From Salpingoeca rosetta (Eukaryota > Protista > Choanoflagellata), in NCBI GenBank assembly GCA_033442325.1, contig JAWQFM010000003.1:2270524-2334523 (forward strand): a stretch of DNA of 64,000 nt, in the 5' to 3' direction. The notes beneath the pieces are model-generated. The model was not told where the DNA came from. It saw only the letters and a list, made by a program, of their open reading frames with translations, and did not search any database. A program made the position numbers and the translations under genes. Shown piece after piece: positions 3,291 through 59,420 of this stretch (position 1 is its first letter; each line of letters opens with the position of its first letter).

Positions 3291-6200
3291 CTACTTTGTT
3301 GGTGTGACATGTGCAGGACAGAACCACGGCTCATCGTCATCGTCCTCTTCGTCGTCCATGTTCACTCCAGCGCACTCGGGGTGATACACGCGGGGGCATC
3401 CCTGGGCGCAACAACACGCAAGAGTGCGGCAGAGTGAGTATGCAATCCACATGGTGTACCACGGACCATTGCAATCACACAATCACACCACAAAGTGCAC
3501 AGTGACCCCTCAAAACACACCCACACGCACACGCACACAACCCACCTCAAAGTCGCACAGCAACAGGGTGCCTGGCTTGCGGCACTTGTGGCAAATGTCC
3601 TCGTGGCCGTCGGCTCCAACCAGTGGCGTCGCGCGTGACTGCGCAGCCTCGCGTCCCTGCATACACATCAGCAACCAACAACATGAATGCCAGTCCGAAT
3701 GGCACACCACCAACCGTGCACACGAAACTCGCGAAGCTCGCGAAACATTGCCACACCACACCCCCCCCCACACACACACACACACATCACACACGCGCAC
3801 ACACCAGTTTCTCGATGACGCCGCGACAGCTGCTTGCACCGCAGTGGCACGTCGTTCGACCACGGCTGCCCAGGGAATCAAGCTGCAACAAAAACACGAC
3901 ATAGTATGTGAGGGCTACGACGACAGTGATAGCGATAGCAGTAGTGTGTGGCGCGGGACAATCATTGAAAAGGGCAATCATTTGCAGAGAATATTCTTAG
4001 CACGTGATGGTGTCGAACCTGGTAGTCGAATGTGAGCTCTGTTCCTTTGGGAATGTCCTCCTTGGCAAAGATGCCAACACGCGTCTCTCCAAGCACGTTC
4101 CATTTCTGCACGCAGTGTGTCAACACGACGCATGAGTGAACGACGATGAACAGACAAGTCGACAACGCGGTTCCACACATGACGTCAGGATGCACACCTA
4201 CGCACACAAACACACACACACACACCTGTGTTTCGCAGTTGGGGCCACAGCTGTGGTTGATGAAACGGGCGAGGTTGGCTTTGTTCCGAGCATCCACAAA
4301 GCTGGAGCCAGAGAGCGACAAAATGTAGAAGCTGTGGTCATTCGCCTGCACAAAGAGAAAAGCGGGAGAAAGATGTGAGAAATACGATGAGGTAAGTGCA
4401 GCACGCGAGCACGCAAGCGCGCGCACACACACACACACACACAATGCACACGCACCGCCTGAGACGCAGCGAGGCGGCGTCGGCACTCTGTAGCGTCGAT
4501 GATTTCGCCCACGTACTCAATGACAAACTGGCCCTCGGCAATGTCCTCGCCGGCCTTGAGGCCCCAGCCCCTAGACCAGATGCGCACAACATTGGCAGAG
4601 GGAAGGAATGGCAGGTGAGCCAAGCAAAGGATGCGGAAGGTTTTACGGGAGGTGGAAAGAGAAGCGGGGGGGGGGGGGCAGACGAAGGAAAGGGATGAGA
4701 ACAAAGACAAAGAGGGACGCAAGAAGCAAGGAAACAACAAAGAGTGGTTGAAAGACAAGTGTACGGATAGACATGGGTACTGCTGCCAACACCATCAAGT
4801 AAAGGTGGGGTGTGACAGGACAACCATCGTCCGCAGAAACCTTGCTGTGCGCACAGACAGCTCTTTGCAGTGACTCGCAACATGCACTGCCCATGGGAAC
4901 AGGGGCAGGCAGAGCACCGCCATTGTGCGGAGAAGAGAAGAAAGGGAAGGAAGGCGTAGAGAGGGAAAGGAAGACGTTTCAAGGAAGGTGGCAACGCACA
5001 CGTACACACGTACACACACACGCACACACACAAAACAAAACAAAAGAATACTTTGATTGTGTGAGAAACGGGATGAGCTTTGGGTACTGGCGACGCTGGA
5101 AGCGGCGGTTCTGGCACTTGTCCTTCACAGGACACGTCTTAGGATCGCACTCGCAGTGCACAATCCGATTCAAGCACGACTGGCACACACACACAAAGGA
5201 AGGCCACACGTGCCAGGACAGAGAACACGCACACATGCCAGGATCAACGTTTGCAAGAGCATACGTGAGCTAAGCGACAAATTGAGAGCATCAAGGCTGG
5301 CACGATAGCGAACATCAGGCATGCCGGCTCACGCGCGACAACATGCGGGTACCCAAAGCACTCACGTCATCACATGTGTCAGTGGCAGGGGAGCAGCAGC
5401 ATTCCTGGCCAGGCGTGCGCTTGCGTGGAATTGTGTACACGTTTGTGCGGACACGTTGGAAGGCTGGTGGCTTGCTTGCCATCCGACCACGAATCGCCTC
5501 AAGCATCGCTGACTGCACGCGAGAAAGCGGCAAGTTAACATGCATTGGTGGTGAGTGGGTTGAGAGACAATGGGACAGAGTAGGGAACAGCATGTCCATC
5601 AGAGCAGCGAGTGGCAACCAAACACACACACACACACCTTGTCAGCCTGCACGGCATCGTAAGCGAGGGCTGCCTCCTGGAGGGCGTGTAGGAACGCGGG
5701 TTTCCCTCTGGAGGTGGAAAAGCGGCTCTTCTCGTCACCGCGCATCCAGCGGATGCACGCGTCATGGCGGCCCCACGATACCTCGTTCGTCCCAAAGAAG
5801 TTGAGCGCGAAGCAAATGCCTGCAATGATGTGATGTGACGTGATGTGATGTGGTGTGCACACGAGGGAAACGGTGGTGTCAGCAAGGGAAAGGGTAAGTG
5901 GGCGAAGCAGGGTGTAGCAGAAGAGCGGACTTTGAACAAGGTTTGGCAACCAGGAAAGGAACATGAACACAAACAAGTTTGAGAACAACAGCAAGAACGA
6001 GAAAAGGAAGGTCAAGGTGCTGTTTGTCTGCGTCAAATCCCTGGCCAGGTGTGAAAAAATGCCCCGCGCCAGAGTAGTTATCACACACAATGATGGTTGC
6101 TCTTGCACAAACTACAAAAGAGGCACGGCGCCCACGGTGTGATGCGTGCGCGCATAAAACGGCAACGCGCCACGGGCGCTGTGTGTCTTCGTGCATAAAA

Positions 6201-7775
6201 GAAGAGAGAAGAAAAGGGGGGAAGGGGGGAGGAGAGGAAGAGAGAAGGAGAGGAAGAGAAAAGGAGAGGAAGAGAAAAGGAGAGGAAGAGAAAAGGAGAG
6301 GAAGAGAGTGACAAGAGTACCGGCACAGCGCACACACACACACACACACAACACAGGTATTGCATCTGCACGCATGACGGGCTGGTTACCTGGTGGCCGC
6401 TTGGATCGCAGCGCCTCTGGGATTTGCGTGTGCTCCAGAATGCGCGCAGGCCAGAACCGGTGTTGGCCAAGCTGGCCAATGGGCGAGTGACAACGCGGTT
6501 GTTGTGGCAGGGCCGAAGAGGAACCAAAGGTGAGAGACAGAAGATTGGTATCGCAGACGGGCAAAGGAAGAGCAACTGTTTTTTGGACACCAGCCGCAAA
6601 GAGGCACACACAGTGCAACCCACCTTATACCAAACAATGTCCTGTTCCGTGGCCTTGACACCGCCAAGGCACTCGTGGCAGTACCAGGGCGAGTCCTCCG
6701 AGGGGGTGCCTGTGAGAGCCAGCACGTCCTTCAGGCACTCCTGGTGGTAGGCAGCAGGGCATGTGTCGCAGCAGAACAGCCTGCCGCCATCACCGCACGC
6801 CAGGCAGATGTTCGACTTGGCATGCTTCTCCACAGGCTGGTGCTTTGGGCACAGCAGATATATCGCATTCTGTCCATGGGGGTTCGCGCAACACATGCAT
6901 GAAATGTGAGTGTTCGCGTTATTCGACAGCACACGTGCACACACACAAACATTCGCGCACATGTGTATGATGCACACGCAACATGAATATGCACATGGCG
7001 AACGCACAAAGAACGCACGCGCAAGCATATGCACACACACACACACCCTAAAACACACACCTCATGGAGACAGCCAGCGGGAACGCAGCACGTGTGATAG
7101 GCAATGGGGCAGCGAATGCAGCGGACGAGAGGGTACGTCGACGCCTGTGGATATGTGCAGTTGGCACACTTGTGCAAGGGACACTTGAACGAGTTGTCCT
7201 TCAGTCTGTCCAGCGGAGCATACGCAGCAAACACGGGTAAGCTCTTTGACTCACGGACAGCACAGCACGTGCTTCACCGCACCGAAATACGCACAACCAA
7301 ACAAACTCAATCCAAACACACTCAACAACCAAACAAACGCCAAAACAAAATGAGCAGCAAAGAGGGTAATACAATAGGTTGCACTTGCAAAGCGAAAACG
7401 TACGCGGCGCGTGGGTTGTTGGAGATGCAGGCGCGGTGGTACTTCTTGCCGCAATTCCTGACCGAGCACGTCTGCAGACCTTCAAGGCCGCCGGGCTGCT
7501 CGCACGCAAAGCACAGGTGGTTGCCGGTCGTGCACGCGTCACACACAAACGCGCCCTGCGGAGCACAGCTGAGCCCGACGCAGAAGAGGTGATAGCTGCT
7601 AAGGCAGCCACCCTCGCAGCACAGCAGGTTGCCTGCTTCACCGCAGATGCCGCAGTAGTCATCGTGCTTCGTCACATCAACACTGCTGTCTTCGCCTGCA
7701 TCTGTCGTTGACGCGTCGCCATCGGCCGCAGCAGCGTCCGCATCCTCCTGACTCTCACGCTCCTGATGACGAAAG

Positions 7776-7812
<37 letters not shown>

Positions 7813-10800
7813 CGAGAGAGGGAGAGCGCTTGTGGGTGAATGCGTGTGTGTGTGTGTGTGTGTCTGACCCAAATAAGAGGTGTGAAAACACCAGTCGTCC
7901 AAGAACAGACAACGAAGCCCAAGGCGGAAAGGAAAAGGTGGAAGAAGAAACGTGTACGGATAGACATGGGTACTGCTGCCAACACCATCAAGTAAAGGTG
8001 GGGTGTGACAGGACAACCATCGTCCGCAGAAACCTTGGTGTGCGCACAGACAGCTCTTTGCAGTGACTCGCAACATGCACTGCCCATGGGAACAGGGGCA
8101 GGCAGAGCACCGCCATTGTGCGGAGAAGAGAAGAGAGGAAAGGGGAATAAAAGACACAGCGTGGACAAGAGAACAAGAAAGGTAGACTGACAAGGAAACA
8201 GAAAACGTGGATGGGGAGGGACACACAAAGTATGGTGCACATCGGGCCAAAACCGCGTTGGAAGAACAAAACAAGCACAAGACTGCCTCTGGTCTTGCAT
8301 ATCTTGCAGCACACAGTGAACCAAGTAACGCAGAGTCAAACGTACAGCAGCGCGTTTTGCCGCTTTTCTCCTGGTGGTTGCGGCCTTGGCATGCCACTGC
8401 TGTTGCTCTTCTTGCGTGAGCGCGTTCCACTGGTCAAGTACATGCTTGGCCGTGTCCGCAACGTCACTGTCCGCGCTTATGCCTACAAACCAAGAAAGAA
8501 GGCGACCATCGAGGGCGTCAGTTAAGCACACCACGAGGATTGCTGGCCACCACACCTCTTCCAAAACTGCAAAACAGGATTGCTCCCGCCAAATGTTGAG
8601 CCCTTGTGGACGTCACAACGTACGTTTGGAGGTTTCGAGGGTGAACAGCACCGGGCCAGACAAGGTCAAGTCCTGTTGACAAATTCAGTGTGATGAACAT
8701 CTTGTGTGAGCAGCGTTGTCGGCAGAGACTGCTGCTTTCACCCACGACCAAGCAAACCAGCCGACCGACATACCAGCCAACAATCAACACACAGACTATC
8801 AGTGCTGGCTCACCGGAGTGAGGCGAATGTGTTGGAGCATTTCGTCTGCCGCCTCCGGTGATTGCAGCTGCTCGACCTTCTGCCGGCCCAGCTCAACAAC
8901 GGCGTTTGTCTCAAACACAAGTAGCTCCCGTCGGTACCGCAGCTGCAACGCAAACACACACGCACGTGAGAGCATGTGTATCAATGCGAAAGTCAGCAAG
9001 AGTGAGAGTGTGTGTGCGTGTACATGTGGGTGAGGGAGGGAAGGGGTGATGCAAGAAGTGAGAGTACACTCGTATTCCATGGGAGGGCACGAGCAAGACA
9101 TAACAAATGAGCGTGAACCGCAGCTCGGTGCCCCACCTTGTCTTTCTCGCTCCTGTCCTTGTACACCTGCTTCTGGTCCTCGCTGAGGGCCTGCCACATT
9201 TCGCCCAGTTTGGACAAGAGCTCCTGCGGCGTCGCGCAAATCTTCTTCAGCTCTTCCTCCTTTTCCTGGGTGGAGTTGTTGAAAAGCGCCGTTGGTACAC
9301 GTGGTGAGACACGGCGTCATGGCCAAGCAGGAGCGCAGCCGCATGTGCAAGGAACACGTCAATCATGAGCAGTCAACACGCACGAGCATGCGTCTGTGCG
9401 TACCAACACACATGCGTACATGGAAATCAACAATGCCGTATGCACAGGACAGGTGTGGCACACACCTTCCGGAAGAAGATGTAGGCGGATCGGCCACGCT
9501 TTGGCTTGTTGCTGATGAGCTTCGACATGGAAGGGGTGGTGGCACCGTGTTCTCTGGCGTGTGCCACAAGCAGCTCCTTGTACTTTTCCATGTCGCGTGC
9601 GTACCGCTGGCGGTCCCGCCGCTCCAGCTCCAGATACGGCGCCTTGGCCTCGTCGGACAGCTCCTTCCACTTTTGCCCGAACACCCTGGAGGATTCTATG
9701 AGGGTGGCAACACAACACGACACGACACGACACGACACGACACCGTGAGTGAAACAGGAGCTGAACACGCATTCTGCGCATTGAGGACGAGAAAGGCCTC
9801 TGACACGCGCAGGAGGCAGATGTAACAGAGAGGACACACGAGGTGAAGTGACAACACACACAAAAAAGGGCAATAAGGGTGGGTGACACGAAGAAAGCGC
9901 GGTGTACGGATAGACATGGGTACTGCTGCCAACACCATCAGGTAAAGGTGGGGTGTGACAGGACAACCATCGTCCGCAGAAACCTTGGTGTGCGCACAGA
10001 CAGCTCTTTGCAGTGACTCGCAACATGCACTGCCCATGGAACAGGGGCAGGCAGAGCACCGCCATTGTGCGGAGAAGAGAAGAGAGGCAAGGAAAGGAAA
10101 GGAAGGTGGGTAGGTGGGTAGGTGGGTAGGTGTGGAGTAGGATGGAGACGGCAGGGAAGATAGATAGGAAAGCCAGGGGATTCGCTAGTCGCAGGTCGGC
10201 AAAGAAGGGAACGAAAGGTATGGAAACAGAGAAGATTGGGGAAAGTCGTCAAACAAGGGCACAGTGCAGCAAACATCGAACAGACCCACCTGTAACGCTG
10301 AGGGGTGCAGGGTCATTGTTGCGCTGCTCTTTGAGAAAGTAGAAAAAGGCACTCGTGTACCTGCAGAGGCGACAAGAACAAGGGTGACCGTCAGGGCATC
10401 ATGCATATTAGAGTGGCAATTGCACGCATGGCAGAGCAAGACGATTCAGCACGAGCACAAACAAAGGCTGGCCTGACTGACCGCTTTGGCTTGGGCGGTG
10501 CTGAGGCGTCCACCTCTTTCGCGCGATCTGACGTGAACAGACAACAAGAGTAAGTGTGAGCAAACAAGCACGTGCGGTGCATGTGTGTATGTGTGGTGAG
10601 TGTGCTGGGTTGACAAGAGCAAACACGACGCAAGCGCGGGTGCGAAAAAGCAGCTGAAAAGACTCGCACAACAGCTTCCAGAGTATGATGTCGCACCTTT
10701 CTTTGACTTTTTCTTCTTCTGCTTCTTCGACTGCTCCTCCTCGTCCTGTCGCTGCTGCTCCTCAACGGCAGGAGCGGGCGGTGCGTCGTACTCGCCAAAG

Positions 10801-12930: not shown

Positions 12931-13057
12931 ACGCCAAGTTTGCTGAAGACTTCCGTTGATAATCCAAATGAGAAGAAATGATCATTCTTCTGGAGAACCC
13001 AGTTTTCCTTCACTTTGTGCTGTTGTCTACTGGACTCAAAATCAACACACGACGACA

Positions 13058-17278
<4,221 letters not shown>

Positions 17279-59348: not shown

Positions 59349-59420
59349 GCGCTCATGGTCCAATGGCTAGGATCCAACCCTCCCACGGTTGGGGTCCGGG
59401 TTCGATTCCCGGTGAGCGTA
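59349..59420 (+). tRNA. tRNA-Gly (anticodon CCC)
   Basis: Acceptor stem GCGCTCA/TGAGCGT, A-box TGGTCCAATGG, anticodon arm CAACC-CT CCC AC-GGTTG, T arm CCGGG-TTCGATT-CCCGG. Confidence 0.96.

Follow-up and report, generated by a model that had tools for sequence, protein, structure and literature searches.

The window analysed here is a stretch of 64,000 nucleotides from the choanoflagellate Salpingoeca rosetta, and its minus strand carries an NSD-like gene in which an element of about 172 nucleotides occurs three times, in each case within a GT-AG intron and sense to the host, at the places where a preliminary description of this DNA had located it. Copy A (4759-4930, minus strand, as are all features given below for the window) lies in the intron that separates the AWS exon from the first of the SET exons, copy B at 7952-8123, and copy C (9902-10072) in an intron that interrupts the first HMG box. 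The sequence of copy B is also the consensus for all four copies present in the genome and provides the reference numbering, position 1 of the element being 8123. The host introns measure 481 nt for copy A (4571-5051), 583 nt for copy B (7763-8345) and 594 nt for copy C (9696-10289). Their removal brings conserved protein motifs together in frame, joining ...FLTQSK to GWGLKAGE (AWS to SET), ...KAAKRAA to ERESQED and, within the HMG box, ...PLSVT to ESSRVFGQKW, respectively.

A fourth copy (copy D, G000:C11:1440485-1440656) was identified on another contig, sense in an intron of WDR75/UTP17, and neither BLAST nor a covariance-model search revealed copies beyond these four in the genome. All of them are intronic and sense, in two unrelated host genes. 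The preliminary description had spoken of three copies, a number that holds within the NSD gene and rises to four in the genome-wide BLAST search; its proposal of an amplification from intron to intron gains support from the additional copy, and the many dispersed or antisense copies that it had regarded as the mark of a transposon were not found. Pairwise identity is 98-100% among the NSD copies and likewise 98-100% between them and the WDR75 copy, as expected of recent copies, and the near-identity of the four probably stems from recent copying or gene conversion. Copies A to C differ at three places, as had been described, namely at the fourth, variable base of the H box (G or C) and in loops, where copy C shows a one-base deletion in the 5' domain and a U>C change in the apical 3' loop. 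When the four copies are compared, five sites vary, of which four fall outside base pairs and one is a C>U change opposite a G. Identity among copies ends after ACAC, which agrees with the earlier claim that it stops one base after ACA and is repeated in the comparison with a second species. The same description had considered the remainder of these introns unrelated. This is true of the flanks except for about 20 pyrimidine-rich bases upstream of the element, which agree to 90-95% between the NSD copies and to about 50% with the fourth copy, so that some relatedness of the introns extends beyond the 172 bases. Across the host introns, the element is placed 121-308 nt from the donor and 188-310 nt from the acceptor site. 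A purine-rich tract follows the element on the plus strand.

At the structural level, the element is organized as a hairpin, the sequence ACACCA, a second hairpin and ACA, with both stems ending beside the boxes. In copy B, the 5' domain is closed at its base by the pairing of 8117-8122 (CGCACA, positions 2-7) with 8043-8048 (UGUGCG, positions 76-81), a stem that ends one nucleotide before the candidate H box ACACCA (8036-8041, positions 83-88). Copies B, C (9986-9991) and D share this ACACCA version of the ANANNA hinge, copy A having ACAGCA (4843-4848). At the foot of the 3' hairpin, 8023-8027 (GCGGA, positions 97-101) pairs with 7956-7960 (UCCGU, positions 164-168) in a stem that abuts the ACA box at 7953-7955 (positions 169-171; 4760-4762 in copy A and 9903-9905 in copy C). 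The 5' domain is a three-way junction that contains a candidate pocket made of a 5' strand at 8109-8116 (positions 8-15) and a 3' strand at 8049-8052 (UGUC, positions 72-75). The top of this pocket is 11 nt from the H box, outside the canonical pocket-to-box spacing of 14-16 nt (PMC2664660, PMC7601244), and the distance between ACA and the top of the 3' loop is 20 nt, which falls to 16 nt when four additional weak pairs are admitted. A candidate recognition element spans 7961-7975; it is identical in the second species, where the last 20 bases of the element are forced by the search pattern, and the strand opposite to it varies without compensation.

The end-anchored succession of stem, ANANNA, stem and ACA is rare by chance. 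It was obtained in 5 of 20,000 dinucleotide shuffles and in 109 of 127,650 natural windows (<0.1%, a count that includes the element copies), and it is absent from the antisense strand. The H/ACA fold is at most 1.3 kcal/mol above the minimum free energy, and the fold energy is no better than that of shuffled sequences, with z = -0.33 for the element and -0.53 for its homologue in the second species.

This homologue is encoded on a metagenome contig of a distant relative, in the orthologous WDR75 intron (75 bits, E 1e-22), where the element is the sole part of the intron that aligns. Identity extends to 149 of 172 aligned bases (the last 20 being forced by the search pattern), compared with 65-71% nucleotide and 33% protein identity in the flanking WDR75 exons, and the conserved stretch opens with the initial base of the 5' stem and closes with ACAC. 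Three helices contain, in all, five base pairs that have changed on both sides with pairing kept, a number equalled by 1 of 500 shuffles and compared with 0-2 in slid controls, as judged from two lineages and an alignment fitted to the model. RNAalifold, a check suggested in the preliminary description, independently predicts the same arrangement of hairpins and boxes, with the basal stems kept in the relative, and conserved G-U pairs are compatible with the sense strand only. The hinge of the relative is ACACUG, which implies the loss of the sixth base of the H box, and contains no other ANANNA. The combination of orthologous intron, conservation and compensatory pairs argues against a transposon, an exon or a chance resemblance.

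These observations favor the interpretation of the element as an intron-carried gene, about 171-175 nt long, whose product would be a small RNA of the nucleolar type built on the box H/ACA plan and which is predicted to be read together with its host gene; we assign to this interpretation a probability of roughly 0.75 on sequence grounds. The assignment to the H/ACA RNAs, with a 5' domain that is enlarged and branched, already made in the preliminary description, is strengthened by the rarity of the end-anchored layout and by the compensatory pairs of the relative. No Rfam family was detected on the element at E<=10, except for a 9.9-bit chance match to a lncRNA, in keeping with the earlier failure to recognise one, and the element most likely represents a new family of this familiar kind. 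The family appears to predate the split of the two choanoflagellate-like species, and its older home would be one WDR75/UTP17 intron, since the only cross-species homologue found lies in WDR75; in Salpingoeca rosetta, three introns of the NSD-like gene seem to have received copies as well. In the proposed biogenesis, the host pre-mRNA would be transcribed with the element included, the H/ACA core proteins Cbf5/dyskerin, Nop10, Nhp2 and Gar1 would bind both hairpins and the boxes, and, after splicing and debranching, exonucleases would trim the intron until they meet the foot of the 5' stem on one side and a point about 3 nt beyond ACA on the other. Like intron-encoded H/ACA snoRNAs of animals, fungi and plants, the element combines two hairpins, a hinge box and ACA with stems closing at the boxes, lies sense in host introns with conservation confined to the RNA, and has one host gene of ribosome biogenesis. 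It departs from canonical H/ACA guides in the three-way junction of its 5' domain, in spacings of 11 and 16/20 nt instead of 14-16, in the H box of the relative, which is devoid of the last A, in the missing Rfam family and in a 3' hairpin with no convincing pseudouridine target. As in snoRNA paralogues duplicated in cis and trans and in snoRTs, the unit is found in several introns and in another gene with unrelated flanks. It differs from snoRTs by having neither a poly(A) tail nor target-site duplications, and copying of the trimmed mature RNA alone does not account for the approximately 15-20 bases shared upstream of the 5' stem.

Other identities were weighed against that of an H/ACA RNA gene. 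Structure and conservation are established for the element whereas its class membership is putative, and the imperfect H box of the relative, the non-canonical pocket geometry and the silence of Rfam would all be compatible with a conserved structured intronic RNA of another kind, either a cis-acting splicing regulator or another class of non-coding RNA, in which the H and ACA motifs are incidental. We consider this quite unlikely, given the rarity of the end-anchored layout and a conservation bounded exactly by the stem base and by ACA plus one base; moreover, the same element resides in introns of two unrelated genes at differing distances to the splice sites, which a portable RNA gene fits better than a host-specific regulator. 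Portability by itself, with precise copies of 98-100% identity in unrelated flanks and the purine-rich tract on the plus strand, might suggest low-copy mobile or repeat DNA of the SINE or MITE type, with no RNA function and a fortuitous resemblance to H/ACA RNAs. Against this stand the absence of terminal inverted repeats and target-site duplications at the copies, of which the preliminary description had likewise seen none, a copy number of just four, with a single orientation throughout and three copies within one gene, and the lack of similarity to tRNA, 7SL or 5S. Neither is the element delimited by GT..AG ends of its own, as it lies inside longer introns, which speaks against a transposon or introner. 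Its retention in the orthologous intron with compensatory pairs, despite 33% protein identity in the adjacent exons, leaves the mobile origin close to refuted. A coding exon was rejected: one frame is open in copies A, B and D and is interrupted in copy C by the 1-nt deletion, the indels of the relative are not multiples of three, and the open frame has no words in common with any protein. The location in an NSD-like gene recalls the human NSD2 (WHSC1/MMSET) gene, one intron of which hosts the orphan H/ACA RNA ACA11 (SCARNA22), expressed with the gene (PMC3674460, PMC6996358). Host gene family, RNA class and orphan status are common to both, three copies sit in introns of the NSD-like gene and copy A adjoins the SET-domain exons; were the two homologous, the association between NSD genes and snoRNAs would predate animals. 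Such a homology is highly improbable and is not supported by the data, as no sequence or structure similarity to ACA11 is detectable, the H/ACA families of Rfam do not score on the element even at E<=10, and the element occurs in three NSD introns plus one of WDR75, the gene that holds the sole cross-species homologue found. The near-identity of the NSD and WDR75 copies is what recent copying would produce. ACA11 is also shorter, at about 125 nt compared with about 172 nt.

Regarding its function, the predicted H/ACA RNA would most likely act on pre-rRNA via base pairing, either as a pseudouridine guide or as a helper in folding or processing. As an ordinary pseudouridylation guide, it would employ the 5' pocket (positions 8-15 and 72-75) to select U2079 of the LSU rRNA (L013 numbering). 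The pocket strands pair fully with LSU GAUA-UU-AUCGCCAU, forming 4+8 bp, two of them G-U, around the unpaired UU. Shuffles of the pocket attained this match in 4 of 1000 and in 0 of 500 cases; with several definitions of the pocket having been tried, a realistic p lies closer to 0.02. Reversed rRNA scores 7 at best, the target sequence is identical in three rDNA copies, and the relative conserves 7 of 8 and 4 of 4 bases of the two strands. Nevertheless, we regard this function as unlikely: only 11 nt separate the pocket top from the H box, the two strands can also pair mutually, and U2079 belongs to a species-specific expansion segment, a variable hairpin flanked by the conserved motifs GGUCCUAAGAGAUGGGG and CCAUCGAAAGGGAA. 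For the 3' hairpin, which is the half with the higher conservation, no pseudouridine-type target above chance was obtained in the rRNA searched. A processing role would instead resemble that of U17/snR30 (E1, SNORA73), which is essential and makes no pseudouridine, two short motifs in its 3' hairpin pairing with the ES6 segment of 18S rRNA and thereby allowing 18S processing. To our knowledge, these recognition motifs are otherwise invariant from ciliates to humans. The element might tentatively be considered the choanoflagellate counterpart of this RNA, with motifs changed together with those of its own 18S rRNA. The canonical m1...m2 pattern is absent genome-wide, and the SNORA73 model finds in the genome only a microsatellite, a false match. 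All six 18S copies carry GGAACA and UGGCGU in place of rm1 GGAAUA and rm2 UGGUUU of other eukaryotes (PMC2664660), and canonical motifs could therefore not pair there. Positions 153-161 can pair with 18S 962-971 (9 bp, one bulge) in a helix whose end at position 161 is separated from ACA (169-171) by exactly 7 nt (positions 162-168), a spacing called invariant for U17 (PMC2664660). Positions 107-113 can pair with 18S 926-933 (7 bp and one bulged A), the topology being inverse and 28 nt of 18S lying between both helices, as in yeast. In the joint pairing test, the success rate was 0.24% for shuffles and 10 of 5612 for natural ACA sites (p ~0.002 under two nulls, with a rank that varies with settings). 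Further likenesses are the H/ACA layout, the variable two-stem 5' domain with no proper pocket and a 3' hairpin that is conserved and holds a large internal loop. On the other hand, the invariant m1 AUAUUCCUA and m2 AAACCAU are missing from the element, both proposed helices require a bulge, and the ES6 site ranks from 1st to about 10th in 18S depending on window and gap choice, in pairing windows that were picked after the data had been inspected. The relative carries a C at position 108, and the 5'-domain loop that best matches rm1 is not conserved in it. The SNORA73 model does not score on the element, which at about 172 nt is shorter than the 200-240 nt of U17/snR30. In favor of the kinship with U17/snR30, one of the hosts is UTP17, active in the same processing steps (PMC7601244). 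If true, an essential 18S-processing RNA would be hosted in an intron of UTP17/WDR75, whose product works in that very step, and would then have been copied three times into the NSD gene. The multi-copy, intronic arrangement likewise recalls U17 of Xenopus, where several introns of one gene hold copies, all six introns of RPS8 containing U17 (PMC7601244).

The H/ACA-like element, of about 171-172 nt, is carried on the minus strand of the window in three copies, A (4759-4930), B (7952-8123) and C (9902-10072), and is numbered here along copy B, with position 1 at window 8123. Their host, an NSD-like gene likewise on the minus strand, encodes HMG boxes, PWWP, PHD fingers and AWS-SET-postSET. As claimed in the preliminary description, one copy lies in each of three introns, always sense to the host, and all three introns have been confirmed as GT-AG: intron A (5051..4571, minus strand; in-frame join ...FLTQSK/GWGLKAGE), intron B (8345..7763, minus strand; ...KAAKRAA/ERESQED) and intron C (10289..9696, minus strand; ...PLSVT/ESSRVFGQKW, within an HMG box). 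Their excision connects conserved protein motifs in frame. The three copies differ in three places only, namely the fourth base of the H box, where copy A shows a G/C difference, a hairpin loop from which copy C has lost one C, and the apical 3' loop, with a U>C in copy C, so that the earlier placing of the differences at an H-box N position or in loops is borne out. Identity among them stops past ACAC. The statement that the rest of these introns is unrelated holds for the flanks farther out, where about 35% identity is background for such CT-rich introns, but not for some 20 pyrimidine-rich bases immediately upstream, which are 90-95% common to the three copies. The stretches from the 3' end of the element to the acceptor measure 188, 189 and 206 nt (window 4571-4758, 7763-7951 and 9696-9901) and are unrelated in sequence.

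The three copies of the NSD-like gene are real but do not exhaust the family, since a BLAST search of the S. rosetta genome has retrieved a fourth, copy D (G000:C11:1440485-1440656), 98% identical and sense to its host. It lies in a 790-nt intron whose host exons match the beta-propellers of WDR75 (Utp17/Nan1), a small-subunit processome gene; here, about 310 nt separate the 3' end of the element from the acceptor. The genome total is four; each copy lies sense within an intron, and the two host genes are unrelated. Neither BLAST nor R1, a covariance model based on these four, detects a fifth one in the whole genome, the next-best matches having E values of 2.4 and 7.3. This is not the picture of many dispersed copies in either orientation expected of a transposon; inverted terminal repeats and target duplications are lacking at the copies, as had been noted before, and no tRNA-like head was found in the element. 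In keeping with the earlier failure to recognize its family, Rfam yields only tRNA for the whole window at gathering scores and nothing relevant either around copies A and B (E<=10) or on the loci of copies B, C and D (E<=5). Inclusion of the element as an exon has also been rejected, because the 1-nt deletion of copy C shifts the frame and indels occur in a second species (see below); besides, the element ends without splice sites. Its single open frame lacks relatives among proteins, and ten ORFs spanning the copies are absent from the protein collection. Sequencing runs that share 40-48% of the words of the window probably do so through exons only and are uninformative about the element.

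A homologue in this second species was obtained by scanning metagenome contigs with 18 fixed bases from the 3' end of the element. The scan produced 14 matches, about the chance expectation, one of which is singled out by the covariance model (L063, MDTD01179820.1, positions 2396-2622; 75 bits, E 1e-22). This contig encodes a WDR75 orthologue, and the element occupies the intron after the exon ending in ...ISFWK, the same position as that of copy D after ...IAFWQ. Between the relative and S. rosetta the adjacent exon is only 33% identical at the protein level and about 65-71% at the DNA level, and the element is identical at 149 of 172 aligned positions, the identity over the last 20 bases of the relative being imposed by the search pattern. 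Conservation runs from the first base of the 5' stem to ACAC, and only simple repeats align in the rest of the intron. An exon-level search for WDR75 relatives returned nothing. The available sequence (L063:1-3084) is that of a choanoflagellate-like eukaryote with microsatellite-rich, CT-rich introns like those of this genome, and the intron positions of its WDR75 gene match those of S. rosetta.

At the structural level, a branched 5' domain is closed by the stem 2-7/76-81, one base ahead of ACACCA (83-88), and a 3' hairpin is closed by the stem 97-101/164-168, directly ahead of ACA (169-171). This end-anchored H/ACA grammar is reproduced by 5 in 20000 dinucleotide shuffles and by 109 of the 127650 windows of 175 nt cut from the natural sequence of this stretch (the copies themselves counted), and is not found on the antisense strand; a scan without end anchoring is unspecific, with about 55 sites per strand. 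The layout originally proposed (branched 5' domain, ANANNA, 3' hairpin, ACA) is present and rare in shuffles, but the stability of the fold is not better than that of shuffled sequences on either strand (z = -0.33), nor is it in the relative; the H/ACA fold lies at most 1.3 kcal/mol above the minimum free energy. Five sites vary across copies A to D; four of them are unpaired, and at the remaining one a C>U stands opposite G (p about 0.05, weak when taken alone). In the relative, five pairs have changed on both sides with pairing kept (U24-A43>A-U, C54-G63>A-U, C117-G144>G-C, A118-U142>U-A and A120-U140>G-C), a number reached by one of 500 shuffles and compared with 0-2 in slid controls; the comparison comprises two lineages, in an alignment fitted to the covariance model. 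RNAalifold independently yields the same layout, and the conserved G-U pairs are compatible with the sense strand alone. The predicted pairs 105/159, 106/155 and 108/153 are disrupted in the relative, so that this region is an open internal loop; its 3' strand (149-163) is identical in both species while the 5' strand varies. The hinge of the relative reads ACACUG, without the sixth A of the H box, and its apical 3' hairpin carries a 52-nt insertion. Another stretch of the NSD-like gene (window 6019-6198, minus strand) conforms to the same grammar, which may mean nothing, as chance should yield about 19 clusters of this kind over the window.

Taken as sequence evidence, the layout, the sense intronic copies and the compensatory changes of the relative favor the intronic sno/scaRNA of H/ACA type initially suggested, and we put at roughly three in four the probability that the element represents a genuine structured RNA of the H/ACA type, intronic, conserved and belonging to a new family. 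With the element retained in a second species, a transposon, an exon or a chance resemblance is largely excluded. H/ACA proteins would assemble on the nascent intron, whose trimming by exonucleases, down to the particle, would follow splicing and debranching. The element appears to have had its older home in the WDR75 intron, and the NSD copies, with 98-100% identity, would be either recent or homogenized by gene conversion; the 15-20 upstream bases that they have in common speak against their origin from a fully trimmed RNA by retroposition. Such a history, from a ribosome-assembly gene as apparent older host to later entry into three introns of a chromatin gene, would make the element a clean case for how intronic snoRNAs move and stay homogeneous. 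No choanoflagellate snoRNAs are described in the literature searched; if the reading is true, the element would add a new snoRNA family close to the root of the animals, preserved in two species of their nearest relatives.

As for its target, the known system closest to the element in behavior is U17 (snR30/E1/SNORA73), which in Xenopus RPS8 resides in all six introns (PMC7601244). Its m1 and m2 motifs, called invariant in the literature, are placed 7 nt before ACA, their pairing partners in ES6 of the 18S rRNA being rm1 GGAAU(A) and rm2 UGGUUU (PMC2664660). A canonical U17 has been discarded for this genome, where the SNORA73 model has no true match and the canonical m1..m2 pattern is absent throughout. 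In all six 18S copies (L009:7802-9901, L005-L008 and L014) GGAACA and UGGCGU stand in place of the GGAAUA and UGGUUU of other eukaryotes; with the sites changed and no canonical U17, some RNA must have co-evolved with them, and the U17 of this genome must be divergent or undiscovered. The element offers a testable candidate, as its positions 153-161 pair with 18S 962-971 in a helix ending exactly 7 nt ahead of ACA, and 107-113 pair with 18S 926-933 with one bulge, in inverse topology and with 28 nt of 18S between the two helices. Only 0.24% of shuffles and 10 of 5612 natural ACA sites pass this joint test. However, the windows were picked after the data had been seen, bulges are needed in both helices, the relative has a C at position 108, and under other settings the ES6 site ranks only within about the first ten of 18S, so that a U17/snR30-like RNA pairing with the organism's own ES6 is a tentative and rather doubtful reading. 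The "ideal" co-varied U17 pattern occurs elsewhere in the genome at chance level (48 matches against 60 in the control); 30 of the 48 had flanking DNA for a basal-stem test, the best stem among them falling in a coding exon.

Less likely still is a pseudouridylation guide whose 5' pocket (8-15/72-75) selects U2079 of the LSU rRNA, in a variable hairpin of domain III, within rDNA recovered from the genome itself by pattern search. The pocket, whose strands are conserved in the relative, pairs fully around the UU at this site (4+8 bp, two G-U), which 4/1000 and 0/500 pocket shuffles achieve, and the site is identical in three rDNA copies. Against it, several pocket definitions were tried, and only 11 nt separate the top of the pocket from the H box, where the rule is 14-16 nt (PMC2664660, PMC7601244). 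The 3' hairpin has no pseudouridine-type rRNA target above chance, and three further matches, of the 5' loop to LSU 1980-1990 (11 bp; the relative has not conserved this loop), to 18S 1412-1446 (9-10 bp) and to 5.8S 133-142, were treated as unproven dredging. Outside these two readings the predicted RNA is an orphan. By host, the closest known RNA is ACA11/SCARNA22, carried by an intron of human NSD2 (PMC3674460, PMC6996358); nothing supports homology with it, WDR75 appears to be the older host, and the parallel is probably a coincidence.

Some additional features were observed along the way. The rDNA units (L008, L009, L010, L012, L013 and L014; contigs C9, C24, C22, C8 and C3 of G000, the S. 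rosetta genome) are dispersed; many sit at the ends of contigs and several are interrupted, the LSU breaking off at model position 605 or 2120 and the 18S at 626. One 18S, which contains an insertion, extends over 3272 nt, and among the rDNA loci recovered only L013 holds a full LSU. The 5.8S rRNA of this locus (L013:6571-6752) measures 182 nt against a 154-nt model, with a GU-rich insert of some 28 nt ahead of its 3' end, to part of which the first 12 bases of the element are complementary (10 Watson-Crick pairs, about chance level). In the window, (GT)n/(CA)n microsatellites occupy nearly every intron of the region, and a long (GTT)n run at 15640-15770 encodes poly-V or poly-Q/T depending on the frame. 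Adjoining the NSD-like gene, ORF 12956-13729 contains 30-nt tandem repeats (13049-13350, plus strand) encoding FG repeats of the SPFGAKPAGQ type and looks like a nucleoporin-like gene. A tRNA gene at 59349-59420 (plus strand; 58 bits) is probably tRNA-Gly(CCC), because its anticodon loop reads CUCCCAC.
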